Shown here: one piece after another, positions 16,426 through 59,934 of the stretch
Numbering within the stretch: the stretch's first letter is position 1
Layout of the letters: every line of letters begins with the position of its first letter
Virus record (IMG/VR): IMGVR_UViG_3300005826_000294
Coordinates: 237,684-301,683 of that record
Strand: one strand, 5' to 3'
DNA length: 64,000 nucleotides
Program-made: the position numbers and the translations under genes
Notes under the pieces: model-generated
What the model was told of the DNA's origin: nothing
Seen by the model: only the letters and a program-made list of their open reading frames with translations
Database searches by the model: none

Positions 16426-19400
16426 TCAATTCTCATAAATATTTATTACTTCTTTTAATATCAATGTTTTAGTTCCATTGTAATCACTAACTTCACATGA
16501 AATTCTAGCAGGTTTTCCAATCTTCATATGATTTTTATATTTAGCATAATCCTCTGGCCAAAGAGTTAGTTCCACATCAGAACCCATAACATCTTCAATT
16601 AAATATTTACCCATTAATTTTCCAGCAGATCTTCCATTTTTAATTTTAAATTCACGAAGAAATGCTTTTATTATTACTTCAATTAATATTACATGGCGAT
16701 TGGGAAGATTTTTTAATCTAGAAATATAAGTTATATTATTTTTTGTAAAAAAATTTGGAAAAAGGTCATTTATATTACCCGAAACTAATTCTCCAAGAAC
16801 TTCCTGTTCATATCTTAATTTTTCCTGTTTTGACCATTCATTACCAGATAATTTAAAAGGAAACTCATCAATAACCATATCAACATCATATCCATCTTTT
16901 ATCTTTTTTCTAAGAAAAGTATTCATTTTATCACGAACCTTTTTTCCTTCATCATGAATATCTTTTCTATTTACATCTAATGAATCAAAACATCCAGCTT
17001 TTGATAATGCTTCAATTTTACTTTTATTTATAATTCTACCATCTACTCTATATAGAAAATCAACAAAAGAAGAAAAAGGTTGCTTTTTTATTATTTCATC
17101 TAAAGCCTTATCTCCCATCCCTTTTATGGCCGCCAATCCCATTACAATAGTTTTTTCATCTAAAACTTCATATCCAGATTTACTTTTATTTATATCTGGG
17201 GGAATAATTGTAACTCCTAATCTTCTACATTCTGCCTTTGCTCCATTTATTTCGTCATCTCTGCTAATTCCTCCTTTTGCTGTTTTAACTTTTAAATAAG
17301 CCGCTAAAAAAGCGGCCGGATAATGACATTTTAAATATGCGGTAATATATCCATTTATTGAATAGAATACAGCATGAGACTTATTAAATCCGTAACCTCC
17401 GAACCCAGAAACATATTTATCCCATACTTCTTTCGCCAATTCATATTCTACCTTATGAGTTTGCATCATTCCTTCTATAAATTCTGCTTCTAATTTTAAA
17501 GCAAAATCTGGATCTTTACCTTTAATTTTAGTAAATTTTCTCAGTTTATCAGCCTTATTTAGATCCCATCCCGCTACTTCACCAGCAATGCTCATTAATT
17601 GCTCTTCTGTTATTGCTAAACCATATGTTTCTCCAAGAGGACCTGATAAAGATTCATGAGGATAAGTAATATCTTTTTTCCCTATTCTTCGATCAATATA
17701 TTCATCTCTAGTTCCTTTTATACCGTCTTTAGCGGCAGCAGCCGGTCTTCCAAGAGCATTGATTATAGCAATATCTAAAATATTATTAGGTTTAATTTTT
17801 TTACATAAAATAGCCATAATCCCAGACTTACCTAATTGAAAAACACATTTGGTTTGACCTTTTTGAATCATATTATAAGTATCAATATCATTAATAGGAA
17901 TATCTTCCATTTGACTTGGAGCATTTTCTATACCAAGATTTCGTATATTCTTAAATGATTCATCTATAATATCTAATGTTGAAATAGCGAGAAAATCCAT
18001 TTTCACTAATCCTTCCTCTTCACATCTGTTTTTCTCATATTGAACTGCTATTTCATTATTTTTATCAATTCTTAATGGAGCAAAATCAAAAATAGGAATA
18101 TCAGAAACAACCATCCCAGCGGCATGTGTAGAATATTCTTTAGGCATTCCAACAATTTTATCAGCATATTCCATAAGTTCTGGGCATCTATCAGCAAAAT
18201 TTTTAAGAATTGGAGATAGTTCCATAGCTCTCTCCAAAGTTTTTACTTTCTTACCATCTTTATCTTGTTCAGGAATGGCCGCTTTAATTGCTTCAGCTAC
18301 TTTTACATAGTTGGTTCCTTCAGGAATTAATCCAGGCATTACATTTCTCATAGATTTTACGAGATCTGGAATTACATTTTTAGGCGTATATGTATTAATA
18401 TTAGAAACTTGGGCACAATGATCTCTTCCATATTTTTCCCTTACATATTCCTGTACTTTATCCCTACCGCTTGATGTAAAATCTGTATCAATATCTGGAA
18501 GATCTTTCTTATGAGCATTTTGAAATCTTTCAAATAATAATCCATAGTCTAATGGATCTACTCCATGAATTCCTAATAAATACGCAATCATAGAACCACC
18601 AACACTATTATGAGATGCATAATTTTGAGTAATATAAGAAAAATCATCTTCAACACTTATATCAAATACCTTATTTGGTTTTACATTAGAAACTTGTAGG
18701 ACTTTTGAGAAAAATCCATCTTTTCTAATATTCCTTTTTCTTACATTTGAAATTAAATTGAGAGAAAACTCTATACTATATGCATCTTTTCTATTATAGA
18801 TTTTATCATCAACTTTCCATTCTCCCCCTTTTCTAAAAATAACAGAAGAAGGTGTATTTAAGTAAATCAAAGCCTCTCTAATTTCAAACATTAATCTATT
18901 ACTACTAGTTATAATAGTACTTGTTTTTCCACGTCTATACCCATCAGAATCAATTAATCCTTCTATTAATGATCTTAATAGTGTATTTGGAAGACATCTA
19001 AAAAATCCTAAATATTTAGTATCACTCGTTTTCTTATATTCTGGAAATAAAGAATTAAATAAATTTACTAATATTTTATCATAAATACATATCTCCACAC
19101 AATTTCCTTTAATATACTTTTTACAAACAAATCCAAGATTATCAAAGAAATTATGTATCCTATCAATCCCGCTATCTTTTATATTACAGGAAAAAGAAAT
19201 ATAATATGAATAATTTTTATCACTTTTATAAGTCCCGTCTCCTATCCACCTTCCAAGAATATAATAAAAATCTTTATTTGCTGGAATAAATCTTTTATAT
19301 TTTACAATATCTTTTTCTTTAGTCCAATTTTCATAAGATATTCCTAATGTTTGTAAATACGAATATATTTTTTCATTACGAATAGAGCTTCTCTTATATT

Positions 19401-21132
19401 TTGCTATAGTTTTGAGAGATAATTTAGTATTTTTAGATATATTAATATTAGAAACAGACCTATTTTTATAATACTCTTTACTTATATATCTACTTCTAAT
19501 TGTATACTTATCATTAGCAAATTGACTTAAATCAATAGATTTTGGTTTAATAATTGTTCTTTTAATGGCTGGAGTAAAAAGAAAATCTCCTGCCTCAATT
19601 TCTCCAGCACCAATCCATTTTAAATTATCTCCTCTAATATGATGTGTATAATTTTTATGGGATCCATATAATCTATGAAGTTTTCCCTCCTTTGTTTCCA
19701 TCTTTTTAGAAACCAATAATCTATGATTTTTTGTAAAAACTAATTGCCCACAAGAATATTGGGTAGAAATAGAAACACAATCTTCATCTATATCATATTT
19801 AAATACATCTAATACTTCTTTAATATTTCCAGTATGAGTATATACTTTTTCTCCTATATTAACTTCATTTATATTCTTAAATCCATTTTGAGTTAAAACT
19901 TTTGTTTCTTTTGTTGTACAACCTCTTCCTATTCCAACTAAAATATTATTATTTTTAGCCCAATTAATCATATCTTCTGTAATAAGCATATAAGATGAGA
20001 AATTATTTCCTTCCAAAATCTTTAACTCTTTCTTAATTCTATTCCATCTTTTAGTTCTTTCTTCTTTATTAAAATGACCAAATTTTTTCTTGAACCCCTT
20101 AATAATATGAAATCGCATATATGCTTTATCTTGAGATAAATCTTCTGGTATATTAGATTTTCTCCTCCATTTCATAAATTCTTCAAAATCCTTTTCTTTG
20201 CTGGGATCAAAGATTGGAAGATGATTTTCTTTGGATTCTAAATAATCAGGATTATCACATCTATCAACTATTTTAATAGTATTTAAAACAGCCTCTTCAG
20301 CAACTTCTATACCATGATGTTTTAAAAGAAAATCATAAACCTCATCTCCATCTTTTACATAAAACTCATCAATTCCATATCTATGACGATCTGGATCATC
20401 AACAGGTTTTTTAGAATTTATAGCCATTAACACATCATGAACTTTAGCATCTTCTTTTGTTAAGTAATGAGCATCTGTCGCCACAACTAATGGTAATTCC
20501 AACTCCTTAGACATTTTAATTAAATTATTATTTAATTTTATTTGACTAAAATAATCATCTTTAAGATCATGAGGTTGAATTTCTAAATAAAACCTATCTT
20601 TAAAAATATTTGCTAATTTTGTAGCATACTTTACTGCTTCATCATATTTATCTTCAAATATAAACTTAGCCAGAATTCCATTACCACACGCAGAAGTAGC
20701 GATAATACCTTCATTATATTCTTCCAATACTTCCCAACTTATTCTTGGAAAAACTCTACCCATACTCACAACAAAATGCTGAAATCCAATATAATTAATT
20801 TTTAATAAATTTTTATATCCTTTTTCATTTTGAGATAATAAAACAATATGCTTTCTTTTTTCGGTTCTTTTTCTACCCTTCTTTCCTGCTTCTGGTTCTA
20901 TAATATCATATGAATGAACGAAATATTGTTCGCACCCAGGAATAAACTTAATTCCTGTTCTCTTATATGCCTTATACGCATCAAAATGAGCCGCTAAAGT
21001 CCCATGATCTGTAACTGCTAATGCTTTTTGTCCCTTTAGTTTTACTAAATCAAATAAATCATCTACACTTTGTAAGGCATCAAGCATACTCCCAAAATTA
21101 TTATGAGTATGTAAATGTGCGAAGTCTTTCAT
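16426..21132 (-). CDS. dnaE: DNA polymerase III alpha subunit containing an intein
   Basis: PHP motifs HLHTH, TDHG, ATDAHY; GRG|S; catalytic PDIDTDF; KMDFL; GFNKSHA; C-terminal OB fold. Confidence 0.97.
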   Translation of the reverse strand: MKDFAHLHTHNNFGSMLDALQSVDDLFDLVKLKGQKALAVTDHGTLAAHFDAYKAYKRTGIKFIPGCEQYFVHSYDIIEPEAGKKGRKRTEKRKHIVLLSQNEKGYKNLLKINYIGFQHFVVSMGRVFPRISWEVLEEYNEGIIATSACGNGILAKFIFEDKYDEAVKYATKLANIFKDRFYLEIQPHDLKDDYFSQIKLNNNLIKMSKELELPLVVATDAHYLTKEDAKVHDVLMAINSKKPVDDPDRHRYGIDEFYVKDGDEVYDFLLKHHGIEVAEEAVLNTIKIVDRCDNPDYLESKENHLPIFDPSKEKDFEEFMKWRRKSNIPEDLSQDKAYMRFHIIKGFKKKFGHFNKEERTKRWNRIKKELKILEGNNFSSYMLITEDMINWAKNNNILVGIGRGCTTKETKVLTQNGFKNINEVNIGEKVYTHTGNIKEVLDVFKYDIDEDCVSISTQYSCGQLVFTKNHRLLVSKKMETKEGKLHRLYGSHKNYTHHIRGDNLKWIGAGEIEAGDFLFTPAIKRTIIKPKSIDLSQFANDKYTIRSRYISKEYYKNRSVSNINISKNTKLSLKTIAKYKRSSIRNEKIYSYLQTLGISYENWTKEKDIVKYKRFIPANKDFYYILGRWIGDGTYKSDKNYSYYISFSCNIKDSGIDRIHNFFDNLGFVCKKYIKGNCVEICIYDKILVNLFNSLFPEYKKTSDTKYLGFFRCLPNTLLRSLIEGLIDSDGYRRGKTSTIITSSNRLMFEIREALIYLNTPSSVIFRKGGEWKVDDKIYNRKDAYSIEFSLNLISNVRKRNIRKDGFFSKVLQVSNVKPNKVFDISVEDDFSYITQNYASHNSVGGSMIAYLLGIHGVDPLDYGLLFERFQNAHKKDLPDIDTDFTSSGRDKVQEYVREKYGRDHCAQVSNINTYTPKNVIPDLVKSMRNVMPGLIPEGTNYVKVAEAIKAAIPEQDKDGKKVKTLERAMELSPILKNFADRCPELMEYADKIVGMPKEYSTHAAGMVVSDIPIFDFAPLRIDKNNEIAVQYEKNRCEEEGLVKMDFLAISTLDIIDESFKNIRNLGIENAPSQMEDIPINDIDTYNMIQKGQTKCVFQLGKSGIMAILCKKIKPNNILDIAIINALGRPAAAAKDGIKGTRDEYIDRRIGKKDITYPHESLSGPLGETYGLAITEEQLMSIAGEVAGWDLNKADKLRKFTKIKGKDPDFALKLEAEFIEGMMQTHKVEYELAKEVWDKYVSGFGGYGFNKSHAVFYSINGYITAYLKCHYPAAFLAAYLKVKTAKGGISRDDEINGAKAECRRLGVTIIPPDINKSKSGYEVLDEKTIVMGLAAIKGMGDKALDEIIKKQPFSSFVDFLYRVDGRIINKSKIEALSKAGCFDSLDVNRKDIHDEGKKVRDKMNTFLRKKIKDGYDVDMVIDEFPFKLSGNEWSKQEKLRYEQEVLGELVSGNINDLFPNFFTKNNITYISRLKNLPNRHVILIEVIIKAFLREFKIKNGRSAGKLMGKYLIEDVMGSDVELTLWPEDYAKYKNHMKIGKPARISCEVSDYNGTKTLILKEVINIYEN
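18607..19920 (-). mobile_element. Intein (438 aa) with LAGLIDADG homing endonuclease
   Basis: Extein GIGRG then C1 (CTTKETKVLT); ends YASHN followed by +1 Ser (SVGGS); motifs LGRWIGDGT and IEGLIDSDG; 1314 nt in frame. Confidence 0.95.
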
Positions 21133-40368: not shown

Positions 40369-42291
40369 CTAAATATCTAAATTCTTTACATTGATAGCAT
40401 TTTCTACAATAAAGTCTTTTCTTGGTTCTACTTGATTTCCCATAAGAATACTAAATATTTTATCTGCTTCAACATAATTCTCAATAGTTACTTTCAAAAG
40501 TGTTCTTCTTTCTGGATCTAAAGTGGTGTTCCATAACTGTTCTGGACTCATTTCTCCAAGTCCTTTAAATCTTTGAAGTTTAAATGAACCCGTTTTTAAA
40601 TTATTATCTTCAACAAAGGTTTTAAGTTCTCTCTCATTTTTAATATAAAAATGATTTCTTCTATAAGTTATTCTATATAAAGGTGGCTGAGCTATATATA
40701 TATTATCATTAATAATTAATTGGGGCATTTGTCTAAAAATAAATGTTAATAATAAAGTTCGTATATGACTTCCATCAACATCTGAATCACATAGAATTAT
40801 AATTTTTCCATATCTTAATTTATTTAAATTAAACCCTTTCCCAATTCCAACACCAGATGCTGTTATAAGATTATTTAATTCTTCATTTGCCATCATCTTT
40901 TGGAATTCACATTTTTCAACATTTAGAACTTTTCCTCTAAGAGGTAGAACTGCTTGATATCGTCTATCACGACCTTGTTTTGTTGAACCTCCGGCACTAT
41001 TTCCTTCTACCACAAATAATTCACATTCATCAGGATCACGAGAACTACAATCTGCTAATTTGCCAGGCAAAATACTTCCACCATCCTTAAATACAGATTT
41101 TCTTGTTGCCTCTCTTGCTTTTTTGGCCGCTTCTCTTGCTTTATGAGCATTAATACATTGGGTTACAATTTTTTTAGCAGTTGGAGGATTTTGTTCTAAA
41201 TACCTCATAACATTATGAGAAACAATTGACTCAACAGCATTTCTTGCATCTTCCGAAACGAGTTTTTCTTTTGTTTGAGAACTAAATTTTGGATCTGGAT
41301 GTCTTATACTTACAACAGATATTAAACCTTCACGAATATCATCTCCAGAAAGAGAAACTTTTAATGTCTTTGGAAGATCAGAAGAACTAATATAATTATT
41401 TATTGTCCTTGTTAAAGCTGATTTAAAACCAAAAGAATGAGACCCTCCATCTGGATTAGGGATGTTATTTGTAAAATATCTAGCAATTTCTATCTCTGAA
41501 CCTCCTTCCAACCATTGAAGTCCAACATCAATAGTTATATCATTACTAATATCAGTAAAAACAATCGGTTTATCTAATAAAGAAGAAGGAGCAAGATGCT
41601 CAATAAATCCTGAAATATCGTTATCTCCGCCAAATATTTTTTTGGTTTTACTTAATTCATTAATAAATTCAATTTCTAACCCTCTACAAAGATATGATAA
41701 TTCTCTTAATTTTCGTTCTATAATATTTGAATCAAAATCTATAACATTGGTAAAAATTGTTGTATCTGGTACAAAACGGATAAATGTTCCTGTTTCTTTT
41801 GATTTTATTGACTTTTCTGAGAATTCTTCTATCTTTTTCCCTTTTTCAAAAGCCATCGTATATTCTTTACCATCTTTTTTAACTATTACTCTAAGACGAC
41901 TTGAAAGAGCAACCGAGACACTAATGCCAACTCCGTGTAATCCTCCACTTATCTTATAATTATTATTATTTTTAAATTTCCCTCCTGCGTGTAGTGTAGT
42001 CATAACTACTTCTAAAGCACTCATTTTCTTTTCAGGCATATAATATGTTGGAATACCTCTTCCATTATCTAAAACTGATATTGAACCATCTTTATATAAT
42101 GTAATAGATATTTTATTACAATGACCAGCAAGATATTCATCTACAGAATTATCTAAAATTTCAAAAAACAAGTGGTGTAATCCCGTTCCATCCTGAGTAT
42201 TTCCTATATACATTCCACTTACTTCTCTAACTGCTTCAAGATTTTCCAATGCTTGAATTTTATATTCATTCTTCATTAAATTTTTCTCCAA
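40369..42291 (-). CDS. gyrB: DNA gyrase subunit B (short form, 640 aa)
   Basis: EILDNSVDE, DNGRGIP, GGLHGVG, EGNSAGG, PLRGK, DSDVDGSHI, RFKGLGEM, LMG..V.PR. Confidence 0.93.
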   Translation of the reverse strand: MEKNLMKNEYKIQALENLEAVREVSGMYIGNTQDGTGLHHLFFEILDNSVDEYLAGHCNKISITLYKDGSISVLDNGRGIPTYYMPEKKMSALEVVMTTLHAGGKFKNNNNYKISGGLHGVGISVSVALSSRLRVIVKKDGKEYTMAFEKGKKIEEFSEKSIKSKETGTFIRFVPDTTIFTNVIDFDSNIIERKLRELSYLCRGLEIEFINELSKTKKIFGGDNDISGFIEHLAPSSLLDKPIVFTDISNDITIDVGLQWLEGGSEIEIARYFTNNIPNPDGGSHSFGFKSALTRTINNYISSSDLPKTLKVSLSGDDIREGLISVVSIRHPDPKFSSQTKEKLVSEDARNAVESIVSHNVMRYLEQNPPTAKKIVTQCINAHKAREAAKKAREATRKSVFKDGGSILPGKLADCSSRDPDECELFVVEGNSAGGSTKQGRDRRYQAVLPLRGKVLNVEKCEFQKMMANEELNNLITASGVGIGKGFNLNKLRYGKIIILCDSDVDGSHIRTLLLTFIFRQMPQLIINDNIYIAQPPLYRITYRRNHFYIKNERELKTFVEDNNLKTGSFKLQRFKGLGEMSPEQLWNTTLDPERRTLLKVTIENYVEADKIFSILMGNQVEPRKDFIVENAINVKNLDI

Positions 42292-42991
42292 CTTTCATAT
42301 CGTGATCTGTTTCCCATTTATATATTAAACTATATCCTTCATTAATTAAAATCTTTGCTCTTTCTATTGTTTTATTATATAATTCACCAAATTTTATTTT
42401 AAGCCTTTTATTTAATTCATTTGATTTATAAAGTTTAGGGTTCCCATGCCAGAAATCTCCATAGTATTCATATATTGTATTTGTTCTTTTATTAAAACCA
42501 TCAACCAAAAATTTATTTTCTTTAATATATATTATCTTTTCTTGTTCTATATTGTTAATATTACTTAACCATTCATCTGCTTGTTTAGATTTATTAGAGT
42601 AGGCACATCTTGGACATCCATTTTTTCTCATATGGCAATTCGGGATTTGATAAAACTCACCATGATCTGGACAAATTATTATTACTTTCCTATGAGCATT
42701 AATATAATTTACTTTTGAATAATCATATTTATTATTATGGGTTTTATTTGATCTCTTTAAAAATTCTTCTTTTGATAGTTGAAACTTTTTTCTTAACTTG
42801 TATTTCATACATTTTCTACAATCTTGCCCAATTAAATGTTTTGATGGTTTTTGTTGAAACTCTCCATGTCTTGGACAAATTATTGTAATTTTTGTATTTA
42901 AATTCACATATTCTATTTTCTCATAATTATATTTATTTCCATGAACTTCTTTTGCTCTTCTTAAAAACCATTCTTTTTTATATGCCTTCAT
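42266..42991 (-). CDS. Homing-endonuclease-like protein: 2 Zn-binding repeats plus nuclease domain; overlaps the gyrB start
   Basis: Two repeat units; LVDGFNKRTNTIYEYYGDFWHGNP. Confidence 0.8.
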   Translation of the reverse strand: MKAYKKEWFLRRAKEVHGNKYNYEKIEYVNLNTKITIICPRHGEFQQKPSKHLIGQDCRKCMKYKLRKKFQLSKEEFLKRSNKTHNNKYDYSKVNYINAHRKVIIICPDHGEFYQIPNCHMRKNGCPRCAYSNKSKQADEWLSNINNIEQEKIIYIKENKFLVDGFNKRTNTIYEYYGDFWHGNPKLYKSNELNKRLKIKFGELYNKTIERAKILINEGYSLIYKWETDHDMKVGEKFNEE

Positions 42992-43392
42992 TCTTTATTT
43001 TCATATTTTGCCCATAATTCTTCTTGCTTTTTTAGTTTATTTTTTACTCTTTTTAGCATTTCATAAATATTTAATTCTTCAATATTTCCCAAAGCAAGTG
43101 TGATTACAAGAACATCAATTATTTCTTCCTGAAGTTTTTCTTTTGATGTTGCTATATCCTTAAATTTATTCATTTTATTTGGAGAACCATGATTGTATTC
43201 AATTGCTTCTGAATATTCTCCAACTTCTTCTACCAACTTTCTAAATAATCTTTCTCTATCATCATATCCATTTACTTTAAAATTAGATATAAGTTTTTCA
43301 ATATCTTTTATTAACATATCATTAGGCATAGATAATAAAGATCTAAATATACTTTGTAAATCTATATGAATATCAGACATTAATTCCTCCAA
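42988..43392 (-). CDS. MazG-like nucleotide pyrophosphohydrolase
   Basis: KLVEEVGEYSEAI...LQEEIIDVL. Confidence 0.85.
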   Translation of the reverse strand: MEELMSDIHIDLQSIFRSLLSMPNDMLIKDIEKLISNFKVNGYDDRERLFRKLVEEVGEYSEAIEYNHGSPNKMNKFKDIATSKEKLQEEIIDVLVITLALGNIEELNIYEMLKRVKNKLKKQEELWAKYENKE

Positions 43393-43574
43393 AATGGATC
43401 TGGTTTTTCTGTATTTTCATCTACATTTGGAACTGGTTCTGATATAACATATTCTTCAGAAAACCATCCCCATAAATCTATCATTTGACATCTCTCTGAA
43501 CAAAATGGATAATATCTATTATTTTCTAATATATCTCTTTCTGATTCGCATATTATACATTTTCCAAATTTCAT
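43380..43574 (-). CDS. yacG: YacG-family DNA gyrase inhibitor
   Basis: CIIC...YPFCSERCQMIDLWGWFSEEYVI matches the YacG pattern CxxC...PFCSxRCxxIDLxxW..E. Confidence 0.88.
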   Translation of the reverse strand: MKFGKCIICESERDILENNRYYPFCSERCQMIDLWGWFSEEYVISEPVPNVDENTEKPDPFWRN

Positions 43575-44053
43575 TAACTACAATCCTCCACTATTATAAT
43601 AGATCCATCTTTAACTCCTTGATCTAATATAGTATTTGTATAAACGTCATTATTACTTATACTTATTTTACATATATTTCCTTCTATTTTAGAAATTTGT
43701 TCTTGCTTTTTTTGAAAATTATCAATTTCTTCTTTTAAATATTGAATAAGTTTTCCAGCTGTAATGTTATATCCAAATCCTCTATATTTAGGTGGAACTT
43801 CATTTAAATTAAAGATTTCTAATGATTTTATATTTTTCATAGTAACATCAATATCATGTTGAATATTATCTAATATCTGCTTTTTAGAATCACTTTCTAT
43901 TCTTGTCTCATTATCATAAAATCCATTATTTTTAATATGATCTATTATATTTAGAGATTTTCTACCACATGTTGGGCATGGATCTATATTTTCAATCTTG
44001 ATTGTAAAACTTGAAGAACTACTATTACTTACAAATCCATTTCTAATCTTCAT
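43574..44053 (-). CDS. Hypothetical protein with MKIRNGFVSNSSSSSF N-terminus (downstream copy)
   Basis: Shared leader; CPTC motif. Confidence 0.8.
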   Translation of the reverse strand: MKIRNGFVSNSSSSSFTIKIENIDPCPTCGRKSLNIIDHIKNNGFYDNETRIESDSKKQILDNIQHDIDVTMKNIKSLEIFNLNEVPPKYRGFGYNITAGKLIQYLKEEIDNFQKKQEQISKIEGNICKISISNNDVYTNTILDQGVKDGSIIIVEDCS

Positions 44054-44061
44054 GTTATCAC

Positions 44062-44382
44062 CTACATATCTATAGAATATGAAAAAACTTCTTCTTTGTT
44101 TTTATTAACCATAACTTTATATTTATCCCATATTGAATAAATTTTGTCTTCTTCAATATCAATATTTAATTCACATAAAGTATAAAAATCTTCACTTGAA
44201 ACACATTCTCCAACAATTAAATCAAATCCACAAAATTTACTTTTTTGGTTCATAATAGCATTTACTACAGACTTTTCTATTTCATTAAGTTGGTCCATTA
44301 CTTTTTGATGATTTTGAATAGTAGTTGCTATAATAAAACTTGAAGAACTACTGTTGCTTACAAATCCATTTCTAATCTTCAT
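44062..44382 (-). CDS. Hypothetical protein with MKIRNGFVSNSSSSSF N-terminus (middle copy; probable start 44382)
   Basis: ATGA overlap with the upstream stop; SD GGGAGG. Confidence 0.8.
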   Translation of the reverse strand: MKIRNGFVSNSSSSSFIIATTIQNHQKVMDQLNEIEKSVVNAIMNQKSKFCGFDLIVGECVSSEDFYTLCELNIDIEEDKIYSIWDKYKVMVNKNKEEVFSYSIDM

Positions 44383-44843
44383 TTCTTTTTCTCCTCCCAT
44401 CCTTTTAGATTTTTAAATTTCTCTCTAATTTCCTGATGAATTTTATCACGATTTTGAGAAAACTTTTCTAACAAAAAATCTGCTTCTAAATTTTTAGAAA
44501 TATAAGTTAAATTACAAATAGGGCAAACTTCTTCATGTAATCTAAAACCATTATATTTCTTAATCCACCTTATTTTATCTTCAGTTTCAAGAAAATCATT
44601 AACTTGACTATCTATAAGATTTAATTTTTCAATTACTTTATTAATATCAGAAGATAATTCATTTATAGATTTATCTATCCATTTTTCACAATCCTGACAA
44701 ATCTCATGATCACGACAACAATAATATACATCTATCTCATATTGATTATCATATCCTTCATATACCTCATATACCTCATTACAAACATTACAAACAAAAC
44801 TTGAAGAACTACTATTGCTTACAAATCCATTTCTAATCTTCAT
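44379..44843 (-). CDS. Hypothetical Cys-rich protein with MKIRNGFVSNSSSSSF N-terminus (upstream copy)
   Basis: CNVC, CCRDHEICQDC, CPIC; ATGA overlap with rnhB. Confidence 0.8.
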   Translation of the reverse strand: MKIRNGFVSNSSSSSFVCNVCNEVYEVYEGYDNQYEIDVYYCCRDHEICQDCEKWIDKSINELSSDINKVIEKLNLIDSQVNDFLETEDKIRWIKKYNGFRLHEEVCPICNLTYISKNLEADFLLEKFSQNRDKIHQEIREKFKNLKGWEEKKK

Positions 44844-45571
44844 TCAATCTCCATATTAGGTAATATTGGTTTCCAAATCTTTTTTGACTCTTTCCATATA
44901 ATATAATCGGATTTCTTTTTCCCATTTACTACATTATCTTTAAAAAAATCATCTATTCCAATTTTATCTTTAATTGCTTGATATTCTTTATATCTTTCCA
45001 TACAATATTTAAAATACATAAATTGTGTACGATGAATATCGCATGGTCCATGTAAAACTATTCCCAATCTATGAGTTGGAGAATAATAACCCGCATTGTT
45101 TTCAAATCCATAATAACTATATATATCTGTTTTTGATAATTCCTCCATCATATTATCTCTATGAACTTTGGCAATAATAGAGGCTGCCCCAGTTTGCCAA
45201 AACTTTGCGTCTGCCTTTATAACAGCTTCTTGTTCTATATCTAAATCTGGAATTATGAATTTTCCATCAACAATTACCTTTTTTATTTTTATACCTCTAT
45301 TTATAAAATCTAAAACCGCTTCCTTCATCGCTAAAAAACGAGCATAAAAAACATTATAATCTAATATGTTTTTTACAGATCCAGACTTTATAGAATGAGG
45401 AAGTTTCATCAACTCAACCGATAATTTCTCTCTCGTTTTTTTAGTAAGTTTTTTACTATCTCGAATTCCAGATATAGGTGGTTTCTCATTTTCATCTACA
45501 GCAACAGCTCCAACTATCAAATCTCCTGCTATACTTGACATTCCAACTTCATCTACATAAACATTAACCAT
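44840..45571 (-). CDS. rnhB: Ribonuclease HII
   Basis: VDEVG, RDSKKL, VDGK, KADAK, AASIIAKVHRD. Confidence 0.88.
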   Translation of the reverse strand: MVNVYVDEVGMSSIAGDLIVGAVAVDENEKPPISGIRDSKKLTKKTREKLSVELMKLPHSIKSGSVKNILDYNVFYARFLAMKEAVLDFINRGIKIKKVIVDGKFIIPDLDIEQEAVIKADAKFWQTGAASIIAKVHRDNMMEELSKTDIYSYYGFENNAGYYSPTHRLGIVLHGPCDIHRTQFMYFKYCMERYKEYQAIKDKIGIDDFFKDNVVNGKKKSDYIIWKESKKIWKPILPNMEIE

Positions 45572-58432: not shown

Positions 58433-59395
58433 TTATACTAATAACTCTACACATTCAGGCATCATATTTTCAAAAATATTTCTTCCATATGGAACCATAT
58501 TTAACTTTTTAAAATGAGTAATTAATGTTACAGATGAAGAATGACTTTCTATTATTGAATTTCTTATTTCATTACGTAAAATATCTCTTGTAAAATAAAT
58601 TATATCATCTGATAAATTAATCGAATCCAGTTCCTTTACCATACTATGATTAGAAGAAAGAATTATTCTATGTGAAAATCGTTCTGAAGTATCCCAAGAA
58701 ATAAATTTATTAAATTTTCCTATTAAAGAAGATGCTTTTTTAAGTTCCTTTATAGAAAACCATAATAATAATTTCTTTTGTTTTAAACTGCTTCTATATA
58801 TTGTTCCAGTTCTATCCAATCTATTAATTACCCAATGTGGAGTAAAAAATAAAGTTGAAATGAAACCTAAAAATAATTGAGGAGATCCTGTTTTGCTACA
58901 ATAAATAGATCCAACTTTAAGATCTTTATTTAAAATAATACTTAATCCATGATAATTAGATTTAAAACTATTATATAATTGAGAATTTGTTCGTATTAAC
59001 TTCATTTGACTATGATTCAAAAACCAAACAAAATCTCCATTTATTTTACCACCAATATCTATTCCACAATTATATATTATATCTAAAAGAACATCTTCTC
59101 GTAAATCTACAAGATAATTAGGAGGATATATAACTTTATATGCTCTACCTCCTCCAATTCTTTTATCAAGTCCCACTATTCTTAAATTAGATATAGGTTC
59201 ATTTTCTATTATAAAAGATGATCCTGTTTGCCATTTTTTAGCAGTTTTAATAAATCTATCACTATCTGCTGGTACGATAAATACTGGAATTACTTCTACC
59301 GGTTTTTCTTCTGGTTTTAATATAACTGTTTTAGTATTTTCTTTTAAAATAATGAATAGTTTTTCTGGAATACATATTAATTTCCTATCTCCCAT
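58433..59395 (-). CDS. Hypothetical protein
   Basis: 320-aa ORF. Confidence 0.7.
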   Translation of the reverse strand: MGDRKLICIPEKLFIILKENTKTVILKPEEKPVEVIPVFIVPADSDRFIKTAKKWQTGSSFIIENEPISNLRIVGLDKRIGGGRAYKVIYPPNYLVDLREDVLLDIIYNCGIDIGGKINGDFVWFLNHSQMKLIRTNSQLYNSFKSNYHGLSIILNKDLKVGSIYCSKTGSPQLFLGFISTLFFTPHWVINRLDRTGTIYRSSLKQKKLLLWFSIKELKKASSLIGKFNKFISWDTSERFSHRIILSSNHSMVKELDSINLSDDIIYFTRDILRNEIRNSIIESHSSSVTLITHFKKLNMVPYGRNIFENMMPECVELLV

Positions 59396-59934
59396 CGTAT
59401 AAACCTTTTTATTCTACATGATTCATTAACTTTATTAATCAATTCCGCCAAAAGTTCTTTTATAATTTTAGAATTATCTTTTATATATGTCTGTTCTAAT
59501 AAACAAACCTCAGAAAACCATTGAACTAATTCCGCTTCAGGATTTGAATTATTTGATCGCCTATCATATTCCTTTAAATAATCTTCTTCTGGAACATCAT
59601 CTCGTGATATATATTTTGGTTTCATTGATGCTATTTGTAAAGCAATCTCTCTCGCAAATCTTTGGAACTCTTCAGTTTTGGCAACAAAATCCGTATCACA
59701 ATGAAGTTCTACGAGAACTCCAATTCTATTTCCTGGATGAATATAAGAATGAACAATACCAATCTCAGATTCATTTGTTGGAGCAGAATTAATTATTCTT
59801 AATCCTCTCTTCATTAAAATATTTTCCGCTTCTTTTATGTCCTGATTTGCTTCTTTCAATGCTTTTTTACATTCAGCATAACTCGCTTGGGTTATTTTTC
59901 TTAAATTTTTAATATTTTCTATATTCATTCTCAT
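59377..59934 (-). CDS. tsf: Elongation factor Ts (short form)
   Basis: IKNLR...ECKKAL, GIVHSYIH, ELHCDTDFVAK, LLEQTYIKD, RFIRWEIG. Confidence 0.93.
   Translation of the reverse strand: MRMNIENIKNLRKITQASYAECKKALKEANQDIKEAENILMKRGLRIINSAPTNESEIGIVHSYIHPGNRIGVLVELHCDTDFVAKTEEFQRFAREIALQIASMKPKYISRDDVPEEDYLKEYDRRSNNSNPEAELVQWFSEVCLLEQTYIKDNSKIIKELLAELINKVNESCRIKRFIRWEIGN

Follow-up and report, generated by a model that had tools for sequence, protein, structure and literature searches.

Three neighbouring genes of a phage genome encode proteins whose bodies cannot be aligned, and yet each protein begins with the same 16 amino acids, MKIRNGFVSNSSSSSF. If the bodies are unrelated, what is the role of the shared N-terminus? 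The genes lie within a 64,000-nucleotide stretch of IMG/VR record IMGVR_UViG_3300005826_000294 that was analysed as a whole (hereafter the window). A first-pass annotation, made from the sequence alone, described a near-identical 48-nt 5' cassette in the three genes and proposed that it encodes a portable N-terminal module grafted onto different payloads. The observation was confirmed by our analysis, while its interpretation is supported only in part. Across hundreds of other phages the same "head" is found on hundreds of different small proteins lined up behind one radical-SAM enzyme. It is therefore most likely a portable tag that this enzyme recognises and chemically modifies, although this role is inferred from gene neighbourhood alone.

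Three tandem genes with a common head

The three genes (A, B and C; Table 1) are carried in tandem on the minus strand. From ATG to TTT the 48 nt are identical except at two silent positions (AGC/AGT at Ser9 and AAT/AAC at Asn10). Identity begins exactly at the ATG and ends exactly at codon 16, the flanks are unrelated, and after Phe16 the proteins do not align. A degenerate back-translated pattern finds exactly these three sites in the 64 kb, against none in 100 shuffles, and a six-frame pattern search finds no other copy. The gene order given in the first-pass annotation (rnhB, the three head-bearing genes, yacG, mazG, gyrB) was confirmed by Pfam, with the addition of an HNH/DUF723-type endonuclease that it did not mention. 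The rnhB/A and A/B junctions are 4-nt ATGA overlaps, B and C are separated by an 8-nt gap, and the stop of C overlaps the start of yacG (TAATG).

Table 1. Coordinates in the window of the head-bearing genes, their head cassettes and the surrounding genes.
Feature	Coordinates	Strand	Description
RNase HII (rnhB)	44840-45571		Pfam assignment
Gene A	44379-44843	-	154 aa: head, Cys/His cross-brace zinc-finger region (CxxC...C..H..C..C...CPIC), helical C-terminal part
Head cassette of A	44796-44843	-	48 nt, encoding MKIRNGFVSNSSSSSF
Gene B	44062-44382	-	106 aa from the MKIRNG start: head and small acidic body
Head cassette of B	44335-44382	-	48 nt; AAC instead of AAT at Asn10
Gene C	43574-44053	-	159 aa: head, CPTCG zinc knuckle, α/β core with long helical hairpin
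Head cassette of C	44006-44053	-	48 nt; AGT instead of AGC at Ser9
YacG	43380-43574		Pfam assignment
MazG	42988-43392		Pfam assignment
HNH/DUF723-type endonuclease	42266-42991		Pfam assignment
GyrB	40369-42291		Pfam assignment

For gene B a longer reading frame from 44400 is probably not the real start, as a GGAGG Shine-Dalgarno sequence precedes the MKIRNG start, which overlaps the stop of gene A. Homologues of A keep the head invariant at 26-56% body identity, and the family of C has a conserved ISYHD-like motif near the C-terminus. AlphaFold2 predicts different folds for A and C. The model of A (pLDDT 87.4) has residues 1-11 below 50, a strand at residues 14-17, zinc-ribbon strands and then six helices, whereas in that of C (pLDDT 91.9, pTM 0.82) residues 1-10 average 51 and the first strand spans residues 13-20. 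Foldseek against the PDB returned only weak RING/PHD/AN1-like hits for A and helical-hairpin look-alikes for C (OSCA/TMEM63, TM about 0.3), both judged uninformative, and the ESM Atlas returned only clusters of viral hypothetical proteins, including those nearest to B. Pfam, NCBIfam and PADLOC gave nothing above threshold for A, B, C or 20 other payloads, apart from one STAS-like DUF4325. A tblastn search of 50,697 GenBank phages with A, C and one large payload found no match, although the low-complexity filter may mask the head.

Distribution and conservation of the head

The head is not a local feature. A 32-position profile finds 20,117 protein clusters, nearly always matching from residue 1, and the consensus is M-K-x-R-x-G-F-V-S-N-S-S-S-S-S-F followed by two hydrophobic residues. 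Among 647 distinct heads, R4 is conserved in 99.7%, G6, F7, V8 and S9 in 96-98% and S11 in 100%, N10 and S12 having been fixed by the search pattern. The bodies are as diverse as the head is constant. There are 57 BLAST body clusters among 141 proteins, HHalign finds no homology among 10 body families (probability ≤10.6%, against 100% for the positive control), and one payload carries a separate Pfam domain, the STAS-like domain. The proposal of a portable module on different payloads is supported by these data. In cellular organisms only 26 such stretches occur in 185,579 species genomes, and the head is thus a simple and highly specific marker of phage DNA for genome annotation.

Could these proteins instead be ordinary paralogues, members of one old family whose N-terminal strand is constrained while the rest has diverged beyond recognition? 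A structural β-strand lies within residues 13-20 in both models, hydrophobic residues always follow Phe16, and tandem arrays suggest duplication. However, the lack of body homology by HHalign, the different predicted folds of A and C, the STAS-like payload and the abrupt end of DNA identity at codon 16 all speak against this reading, as does the fact that the most conserved part (residues 1-12) is the least structured. We consider it improbable.

The first-pass annotation took the retained silent sites to suggest DNA-level constraint or recent conversion. Recent conversion is supported, but a general DNA-level constraint is not. Across 153 copies every synonymous position varies, and Ser uses both AGY and TCN codons at all positions, such that the constraint is on the protein. 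Within the window the silent-site identity is nevertheless far beyond chance. Under the window's own codon usage two independent heads would differ at 10.95 nt on average, the probability that a pair differs at ≤2 nt is 9e-4, and all three pairs at ≤2 occurred 0 times in 200,000 simulations (P<5e-6). The window's exact DNA version occurs in no other viral contig. Near-identity at silent sites is seen within about a third of multi-copy loci, but many within-genome pairs differ at 8-19 nt. A nucleic-acid element, such as a translational operator or a recombination site, is therefore effectively refuted as a general explanation, and the suggested recombination cassette for swapping payloads is plausible only as a by-product of the 48-nt homology. 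Of the two conditions that had been named beforehand as telling against a grafted module, free variation of silent sites among homologues was found, whereas a single shared fold was not.

Asn-Ser autoproteolysis, another of the proposed functions, found no support. Asn-Ser and Asn-Gly are chemically labile pairs, and cleavage at Asn10-Ser11 (or Asn5-Gly6) could expose an N-terminal Ser as a nucleophile or pyruvoyl precursor. N10 and S11 are invariant, with the reservation on N10 given above. However, the bodies share no fold, motif or catalytic residues that could drive cleavage, as a self-cleaving protein of the Ntn, pyruvoyl or intein-like kind would require, there is no His or other general base next to the Asn, and the linkage to a radical-SAM enzyme described below would remain unexplained. 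This reading is very unlikely. A secretion signal was also dropped, since the head is not hydrophobic and has no twin Arg, and so was an amyloid signalling motif paired with a STAND protein, because the neighbouring STAND protein starts with a protease domain rather than a matching motif.

Linkage to a radical-SAM enzyme

Of 146 loci fetched only through the head, 56 contain a homologue of one radical-SAM family within loci of 15 kb or less. The nearest head is on the same strand in 56 of 57 cases, with a median gap of 221 nt and a first quartile of 5 nt. The link is reciprocal. Of 80 loci fetched only through the enzyme (80 of 137 confirmed hits were kept), 71 hold at least one head within ±6 kb. 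These loci contain 283 heads, all on the enzyme's strand, usually starting just after its stop and with up to 12 in a row. In one compact cassette, for example, the enzyme occupies positions 422-1498 of the locus and the heads begin at 1498. No third gene is conserved, the enzyme being present in 75 of 75 non-redundant loci and the next non-head family in 5 or fewer. Body homologues of A (13 of 20 loci), B (6 of 6 other loci) and C (1 of 2) lie in loci that contain the enzyme.

The enzyme has a CxxxCxxC cluster plus four conserved downstream Cys (DSC, EPCES, PCSF and RxCP). All members hit Pfam Radical_SAM, while SPASM is clear in the bacterial clade (E=3e-8) and weak in phage (7e-5 in one phage member). 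It reaches no NCBIfam cut-off, but its best NCBIfam and PDB relatives are peptide and protein maturases (MftC, WgkB, SuiB, SkfB and PqqE), the nearest solved relatives being SuiB, SkfB, BtrN and PqqE. The divergent bacterial enzyme clade pairs with the head variant VTNSSSTSF and the phage clade with VSNSSSSSF, although this co-variation rests on only two clades. In bacteria, a head protein plus enzyme pair sits at the end of Avs1-like defence operons, including those of the culturable Veillonella parvula and Acetatifactor muris (DSM 23669), which points to a role in phage-host conflict and offers an experimental entry point.

In the phage of the window, no such enzyme was detected. A tblastn search gave 0 hits in 149 kb of the 312.6-kb JGI contig Ga0074477_1264118, window included, with 160 kb left out. 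Three DNA-motif scans and one profile scan of viral contigs never list this contig, although together their patterns match 29 of 36 independently found enzymes (real sensitivity is somewhat lower, as one scan kept only the 80 of 137 confirmed hits). Scans with the exact head DNA and with a codon-restricted head pattern were likewise negative for this contig. By a manual tally, about 16 of ~36 large head-bearing contigs also lack a detected enzyme. The head can therefore exist without a cis-encoded partner, and A, B and C may be orphans.

Taken together, the motif, its ubiquity, the diversity of the bodies, the constraint at protein level, the local homogenisation and the gene-neighbourhood link are established by the analysis. 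That the enzyme binds and modifies the head, by which chemistry, and to what effect is inferred, in the absence of biochemical evidence. Of the functions listed in the first-pass annotation, a recognition leader for a processing/modifying enzyme is the one favoured, and we hold it with moderate confidence; the radical-SAM enzyme itself had not been anticipated. In this view, a dedicated phage enzyme of the SPASM/twitch peptide-maturase branch would be followed, in the typical arrangement, by 1-12 small same-strand genes for unrelated folded proteins that all carry the tag. The first ~10 residues would form a flexible tail accessible to the enzyme, and residues 13-16 would begin the first β-strand of whatever body follows. 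One common modification would be installed on many accessory proteins, candidates being a cross-link or cyclophane around F7-x-S9/N10, oxidation of a Ser, or epimerisation. The window would hold three such genes, translationally coupled inside the rnhB-yacG-mazG replication operon and away from any maturase gene, with their near-identical DNA arising from local gene conversion across the 48-nt homology rather than from selection on the nucleotide sequence. Two features fit less well. The N-terminal extension of the enzyme (~50 aa) is too short for a canonical RiPP recognition element, and the predicted strand at residues 13-16 means that the head is not a fully detachable leader.

The same neighbourhood could also be explained if the head were a docking peptide rather than a substrate. 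The tagged proteins would then be interchangeable adaptors or regulators that bring the enzyme different targets, such as host or defence proteins, or switch it on and off. The bodies do look like binding modules (zinc fingers, a coiled-coil hairpin, a STAS-like domain), and the Avs1-like operons are in keeping with this. However, no precedent is known to us among SPASM/twitch enzymes, whose conserved partner sequences are substrates, 16 nearly invariant consecutive residues rich in Ser fit a reaction site better than a simple anchor, and heads also occur in genomes with no detected enzyme. This alternative is unlikely. Equally unlikely is that the head acts independently of the enzyme, as a short linear motif bound by a conserved host or phage hub (strand augmentation, targeting, assembly or timed degradation), the enzyme being only an optional modifier or a co-resident of the same accessory island. 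The enzyme-less contigs, the predicted flexibility of the tail and the alternating K2-x-R4-x-G6 conservation, which suggests that one face of an extended peptide is read, favour this view, and the targeting and assembly roles raised in the first-pass annotation are not excluded. Against it, the reciprocal, same-strand and often abutting linkage is hard to explain without a direct functional link, no candidate hub was found, and a motif read by host machinery would be expected in cellular proteins too, yet only the 26 stretches noted above occur in cellular species genomes. Furthermore, in one enzyme-less genome a paralogue has lost the head, which hints that the head decays without the enzyme.

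A broader reading is possible but tentative. Phages would carry a general protein-tagging system in which a single virus-encoded radical-SAM enzyme installs one covalent modification on a tag shared by dozens of unrelated accessory proteins per genome, marking them for a common fate such as stability, localisation or activity. The tag would also move between genes by recombination across its 48-nt coding sequence, and bacteria would have co-opted the pair into Avs-type defence operons, which would place the system on both sides of the phage-host conflict.

Comparison with known systems

No family model or paper describing the system was found, including in full-text literature searches on the motif, on phrog_7397 and on phage radical-SAM, SPASM and RiPP systems. 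The three window proteins match PHROG family phrog_7397, of unknown function, at E = 1.1e-4 to 1.6e-4. The match is essentially to the head, B and C covering only the first 32-46 profile positions and A the first 84 of 170.

The capsid-targeting sequence of T4-type internal proteins is likewise a short conserved N-terminal peptide shared by very different phage proteins in a hypervariable locus, and its shared 5' sequence can mediate recombination. However, the head contains no Glu and hence no L/I-x-E prohead-protease site, it is invariant across very different phages, the window genes sit in a replication operon rather than a head-gene module, and the partner is a radical-SAM enzyme, not a prohead protease. 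A glycyl-radical site was also dropped. The head has R4-x-G6-F7, with one residue between R and G, at the N-terminus of small unrelated proteins instead of R-V-x-G-[FYW] in a C-terminal domain, and the best relatives of the enzyme are SPASM/twitch maturases, not PflA.

The anaerobic sulfatase-maturating enzymes (anSME/AtsB) and QhpD, which acts on QhpC, are radical-SAM/SPASM enzymes that modify a short consensus motif, including Ser in AtsB substrates, in whole proteins rather than exported peptides, and no leader is removed. The sulfatase motif C/S-x-P/A-x-R is absent from the head, which has no Pro/Ala-x-Arg after any Ser, one tag here serves hundreds of unrelated proteins instead of one enzyme family, and no specific sequence relationship to anSME was found. 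By analogy only, FxSxx-COOH peptides of NTP-dependent conflict systems (Kaur, Burroughs, Iyer and Aravind 2020, PMC7159879) also pair a short F-x-S motif on otherwise variable precursors with a radical-SAM/SPASM gene in biological-conflict loci. The head contains F7-V8-S9-N10-S11, and a variant of the pair lies in Avs1-like operons. That motif, however, is C-terminal and is released by a peptidase within vWA-MoxR/STAND systems, whereas the head is N-terminal, mostly on phages and has no peptidase.

A close parallel is with RiPP systems in which one maturase serves many precursors that share a leader (for example prochlorosins/ProcM and Nif11/NHLP leaders), and with the radical-SAM/SPASM peptide maturases SuiB, SkfB, MftC, PqqE and the sactipeptide and ranthipeptide enzymes. 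In the related loci, though not in the examined part of the window's contig, one enzyme of the SPASM/twitch branch is encoded next to multiple genes that share a highly conserved recognition sequence and differ completely elsewhere, on the same strand and often abutting. Here, however, the partners are folded proteins of 80-300 aa, the conserved element is only 16 residues at the extreme N-terminus and runs straight into the first β-strand, no protease, exporter, immunity gene or separate recognition protein is conserved, and the system is almost exclusively viral. If the head is a radical-SAM substrate tag, more than 20,000 clusters of viral proteins of unknown function would gain a shared, testable biochemical handle, new radical chemistry on a Ser/Asn/Phe motif could be revealed, and a short, autonomous, enzyme-addressable tag could be useful in protein engineering. 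It would also extend the RiPP logic of a conserved recognition sequence, variable cargo and one maturase from exported peptides to intracellular folded proteins, and from bacteria to viruses.

Three tandem head-bearing genes in a jumbo phage replication module

The window is AT-rich (29% GC), packed with minus-strand genes, and corresponds to positions 237,685-301,684 of a 312,596-bp metagenomic contig, JGI Ga0074477_1264118, of which the first 301,683 bp are IMG/VR UViG 3300005826_000294. PHROG and Pfam hits show the replication and nucleotide-metabolism module of a jumbo phage, with a DnaE-type polymerase, SbcC, GyrB, RNase HII, dUTPase-like and dCMP-deaminase-like ORFs, MazG and many homing endonucleases. 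Three tandem genes, A, B and C, each begin MKIRNGFVSNSSSSSF (hereafter the head). The 48 nt encoding it differ at two silent sites, similarity starts at the ATG and ends at codon 16, and each gene has its own Shine-Dalgarno sequence. Exactly three copies are present in 64 kb and none in shuffled sequence. The genes are translationally coupled in the order rnhB-A-B-C-yacG-mazG through ATGA, ATGA and TAATG overlaps. The shared 5' sequence described in the first-pass annotation is confirmed.

Other features of this genome are collected in the table. The phage encodes a YacG-like protein in the same operon as its own GyrB-like subunit, and an HNH/DUF723-type endonuclease ORF lies between mazG and gyrB. 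The DNA polymerase matches phrog_405 in two stretches, while an internal segment (about residues 617-843) matches an unrelated ribonucleotide-reductase PHROG, which suggests an intein or another insertion. An EF-Ts-like product is an unusual translation-factor-like gene for a phage. The JGI contig continues about 10.9 kb past the end of the IMG/VR viral contig, and the genes there may represent host flank (a provirus boundary) or phage accessory genes.

Coordinates of features in the window, in flanking stretches of the same contig and in other loci (L numbers denote fetched loci)
Feature	Location	Strand	Details
Gene A	window 44379-44843		Head-bearing
Gene B	window 44062-44382		Head-bearing
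Gene C	window 43574-44053		Head-bearing
YacG-like protein	window 43380-43574	-	Pfam "DNA gyrase inhibitor YacG", E=7.5e-17
HNH/DUF723-type endonuclease ORF	window 42266-42991
GyrB-like subunit	window 40369-42291	-
DNA polymerase	window 16426-21132	-	1568 aa
EF-Ts-like product	window 59377-59928 (= L227:12226-12777)	-	183 aa; precomputed Pfam hits EF_TS, EF-Ts_N
Genes beyond window coordinate 62,700	L227:1-9400 (contig about 300,400-309,837)		Hits to PDZ, Peptidase_M42, Metallophos, OmpA, EcoRII-C and DNA methylase
Region left of the window	L281-L288 (contig 160,685-241,893)		2851-aa gene with DNA-ligase, DJ-1/PfpI and LigD_N hits; 1402-aa gene with intein and LAGLIDADG hits next to a GpA-type terminase ATPase; 1013-aa topoisomerase I/2'-5' RNA ligase fusion; run of at least eight LAGLIDADG or HNH-repeat homing-endonuclease genes
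Head-bearing gene	L005:6676-7074
Paralogue with decayed head	L005:7080-7556		Begins MKIEPSSFVV
Bacterial operon, Acetatifactor muris DSM 23669	L121:1061-7997
Bacterial operon, Veillonella parvula	L127:2423-8000, L130, L139
Bacterial operon, further loci	L128, L131, L134

Distribution of the head and diversity of its bodies

Homologs of A and C with only 26-56% body identity retain the head letter for letter. A profile of the first 32 residues, searched against 1.84 billion representatives, finds 20,117 clusters at E<=1e-3, and the match almost always starts at residue 1. A degenerate DNA pattern hits at least 120 stretches of viral contigs, a list that a later restricted scan suggests is nearly complete. 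The same pattern hits only 26 stretches in one genome each of 185,579 bacterial and archaeal species, mostly in MAG contigs. The 160 complete head-bearing ORFs have a median length of 133 aa, and 141 distinct proteins fall into 57 BLAST clusters once the head is removed. Over all fetched loci there are 647 distinct heads with the consensus M1 K2(98%) x R4(99.7%) x G6 F7 V8 S9 (96-98%) N10 S11 S12 S13(93%) S14(84%) S15(97%) F16(96%), followed by two hydrophobic residues, although N10 and S12 were fixed by the search pattern. Pfam and NCBIfam do not model the head, whereas PHROGs appears to include it as phrog_7397, a family without functional annotation. Some single predicted proteins in the protein database (P0056, P0057, P0058, P0059, P0060, P0098 and P0170) contain two complete heads, the second internal and preceded by Met. 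These could be true fusions of two tagged modules or read-through of tandem genes, for example through stop-codon recoding or assembly errors.

Is the head a separable module, or are these simply divergent paralogs? Profile-profile comparison of ten body families without the head gives probabilities of 10.6% or less, against 100% for the positive control (family A against its IMG/VR counterpart). AlphaFold2 predicts two different architectures. Protein C (148-sequence alignment, pLDDT 91.9) is predicted to have an alpha/beta core with a long helical hairpin, and protein A (22 sequences, pLDDT 87.4) to have zinc-ribbon strands followed by six helices. In both models residues 1-10 or 1-11 are the least confident part (mean pLDDT 51 and 46), while residues 13-17 or 13-20 form the first strand. 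One payload carries a STAS-like Pfam domain, and 32 of 33 long payload representatives carry none. In locus L005 a head-bearing gene is followed directly by a paralog with a clearly homologous body but a decayed head. This occurs in a clade of phages of about 215 kb (L005, L040, L108 and L111) in which no radical-SAM partner was detected. Together these data support a separable module on different payloads, and the single shared fold that had been named beforehand as refuting this view was not found.

The silent-site identity in the window raises the alternative of constraint on the nucleic acid. However, across 153 exact-peptide copies every synonymous site varies, Arg uses AGA and CGN, and each Ser uses both AGY and TCN. 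The general constraint is therefore on the peptide. Within genomes the picture is bimodal, in that pairs of heads in the same locus differ either at 0-5 nt or at 8-19 nt, while pairs between genomes of similar GC content differ at 12 nt on average. In this window the pairs differ at 1, 1 and 2 nt, whereas its own codon usage predicts 10.95 differences. All three pairs at 2 or fewer never occurred in 200,000 simulations, the heads use rare codons (AAG, AGC), and this exact DNA version exists in no other viral contig. The simplest reading is local gene conversion, or a very recent copy, confined to the 48-nt homology. Heads on unrelated bodies are homogenized at the DNA level in several other phages (L062, with three heads at 0 differences; L009/L046/L102, L025, L097, L084 and L096), but other genomes keep heads that differ at 8-19 nt, so concerted evolution of the cassette is common but not universal.

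Linkage to a radical-SAM enzyme family

Scanning the head-fetched loci for CxxxCxxC motifs, followed by BLAST, revealed one radical-SAM family of about 330-400 aa with the N-terminal signature YNY.F...TG.FARWG....DDP..SP.GPEILDIE..T.C...C.FCYKSN. The family is present in 56 of 146 loci, many of which are only a few kb long, and the nearest head is on the same strand in 56 of 57 cases, at a median gap of 221 nt. In the reverse direction, 80 loci fetched through the enzyme alone contain 283 heads in 71 loci. Every head is on the strand of the enzyme, typically starting right after its stop, with up to 12 in a row. Nothing else is conserved in the cassette. The enzyme has the radical-SAM cluster and four more conserved Cys. 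It hits Pfam Radical_SAM and, clearly in the bacterial clade and weakly in phage, SPASM. Its NCBIfam hits, to peptide and protein maturases, are all sub-threshold, and its closest solved relatives by profile are SuiB, SkfB, BtrN, PqqE and a GDGT synthase. In the enzyme tree the bacterial clade pairs with the head variant VTNSSSTSF and the phage clade with VSNSSSSSF. Body homologs of A, B and C occur in enzyme-containing loci of other phages.

A conserved bacterial operon places the head-enzyme pair inside an antiviral STAND system. It comprises an MBL-fold protein (PADLOC LmuA/Avs1a-like, E=3e-62), a 925-984-aa trypsin-like protease fused to a STAND/NACHT NTPase (Avs2-like), a 136-142-aa protein, a 137-aa head-bearing protein (MKIRNGFVTNSSSTSF) and a radical-SAM/SPASM gene that overlaps the stop of the latter by 4 nt. 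In A. muris an integron-cassette-like protein follows.

The enzyme is not in the window. The JGI contig was followed with exact-protein matches from position 309,837 down to 160,685 (stretches L227 and L280-L288), and tblastn with 22 family members found no hit and no further head there. Three DNA-motif scans and one profile scan of the viral collection never returned this contig, although the union of their patterns matches 29 of 36 independently ascertained enzymes. By a manual tally of the locus table, about 16 of ~36 head-bearing contigs of 150 kb or more also lack a detected enzyme. As a rough estimate, it is possible, though somewhat less likely than not, that the enzyme lies in the remaining 160 kb or in an unassembled part of the genome. 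Otherwise these are orphan heads, and this is the main weakness in explaining how the three genes work here.

Proposed mechanism and comparison with known systems

In the best-supported model, the head is the recognition and reaction site of the radical-SAM enzyme. The flexible N-terminal tail, which emerges first from the ribosome, would enter the enzyme, where the K2/R4/G6-F7-V8 face and the S9-N10-S11-S12-S13 run would be read residue by residue, and a hydrogen-atom abstraction would lead to a common modification of a type that cannot be named on present evidence. Since neither a protease nor an exporter is conserved, the modified proteins would act inside the infected cell. The analysis itself establishes the gene-neighborhood link, the constraint on the peptide and the variety of bodies behind it, whereas recognition and modification of the head by the enzyme are inferred. 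Arrays of small, fast-evolving, mostly unannotatable proteins are typical of host-takeover and anti-defense regions, but that role is likewise inferred rather than shown.

The interpretation in the first-pass annotation is partly supported. The proposals of a portable N-terminal module and of recent conversion are upheld and that of a leader for a modifying enzyme is favored by the evidence, but a DNA-level constraint is not supported. The finding opens a very large, coherent and directly testable class of viral proteins, although its weight is tempered by the purely genomic nature of the evidence and by the missing enzyme in this particular phage.

No Pfam or NCBIfam model covers the system, the PHROG family is unannotated and literature searches found nothing on it; it is therefore not assigned to any named family, although its general logic is already known. 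That logic matches RiPP systems in which one maturase serves many leader-sharing precursors, and also protein-modifying SPASM enzymes such as anSME and QhpD. The F-x-S core recalls the FxSxx peptides paired with radical-SAM/SPASM genes in conflict systems (PMC7159879). What differs is the position of the tag at the extreme N-terminus and its length of 16 residues, the folded protein cargo in place of peptides, the lack of processing or export genes, and an almost exclusively viral distribution.
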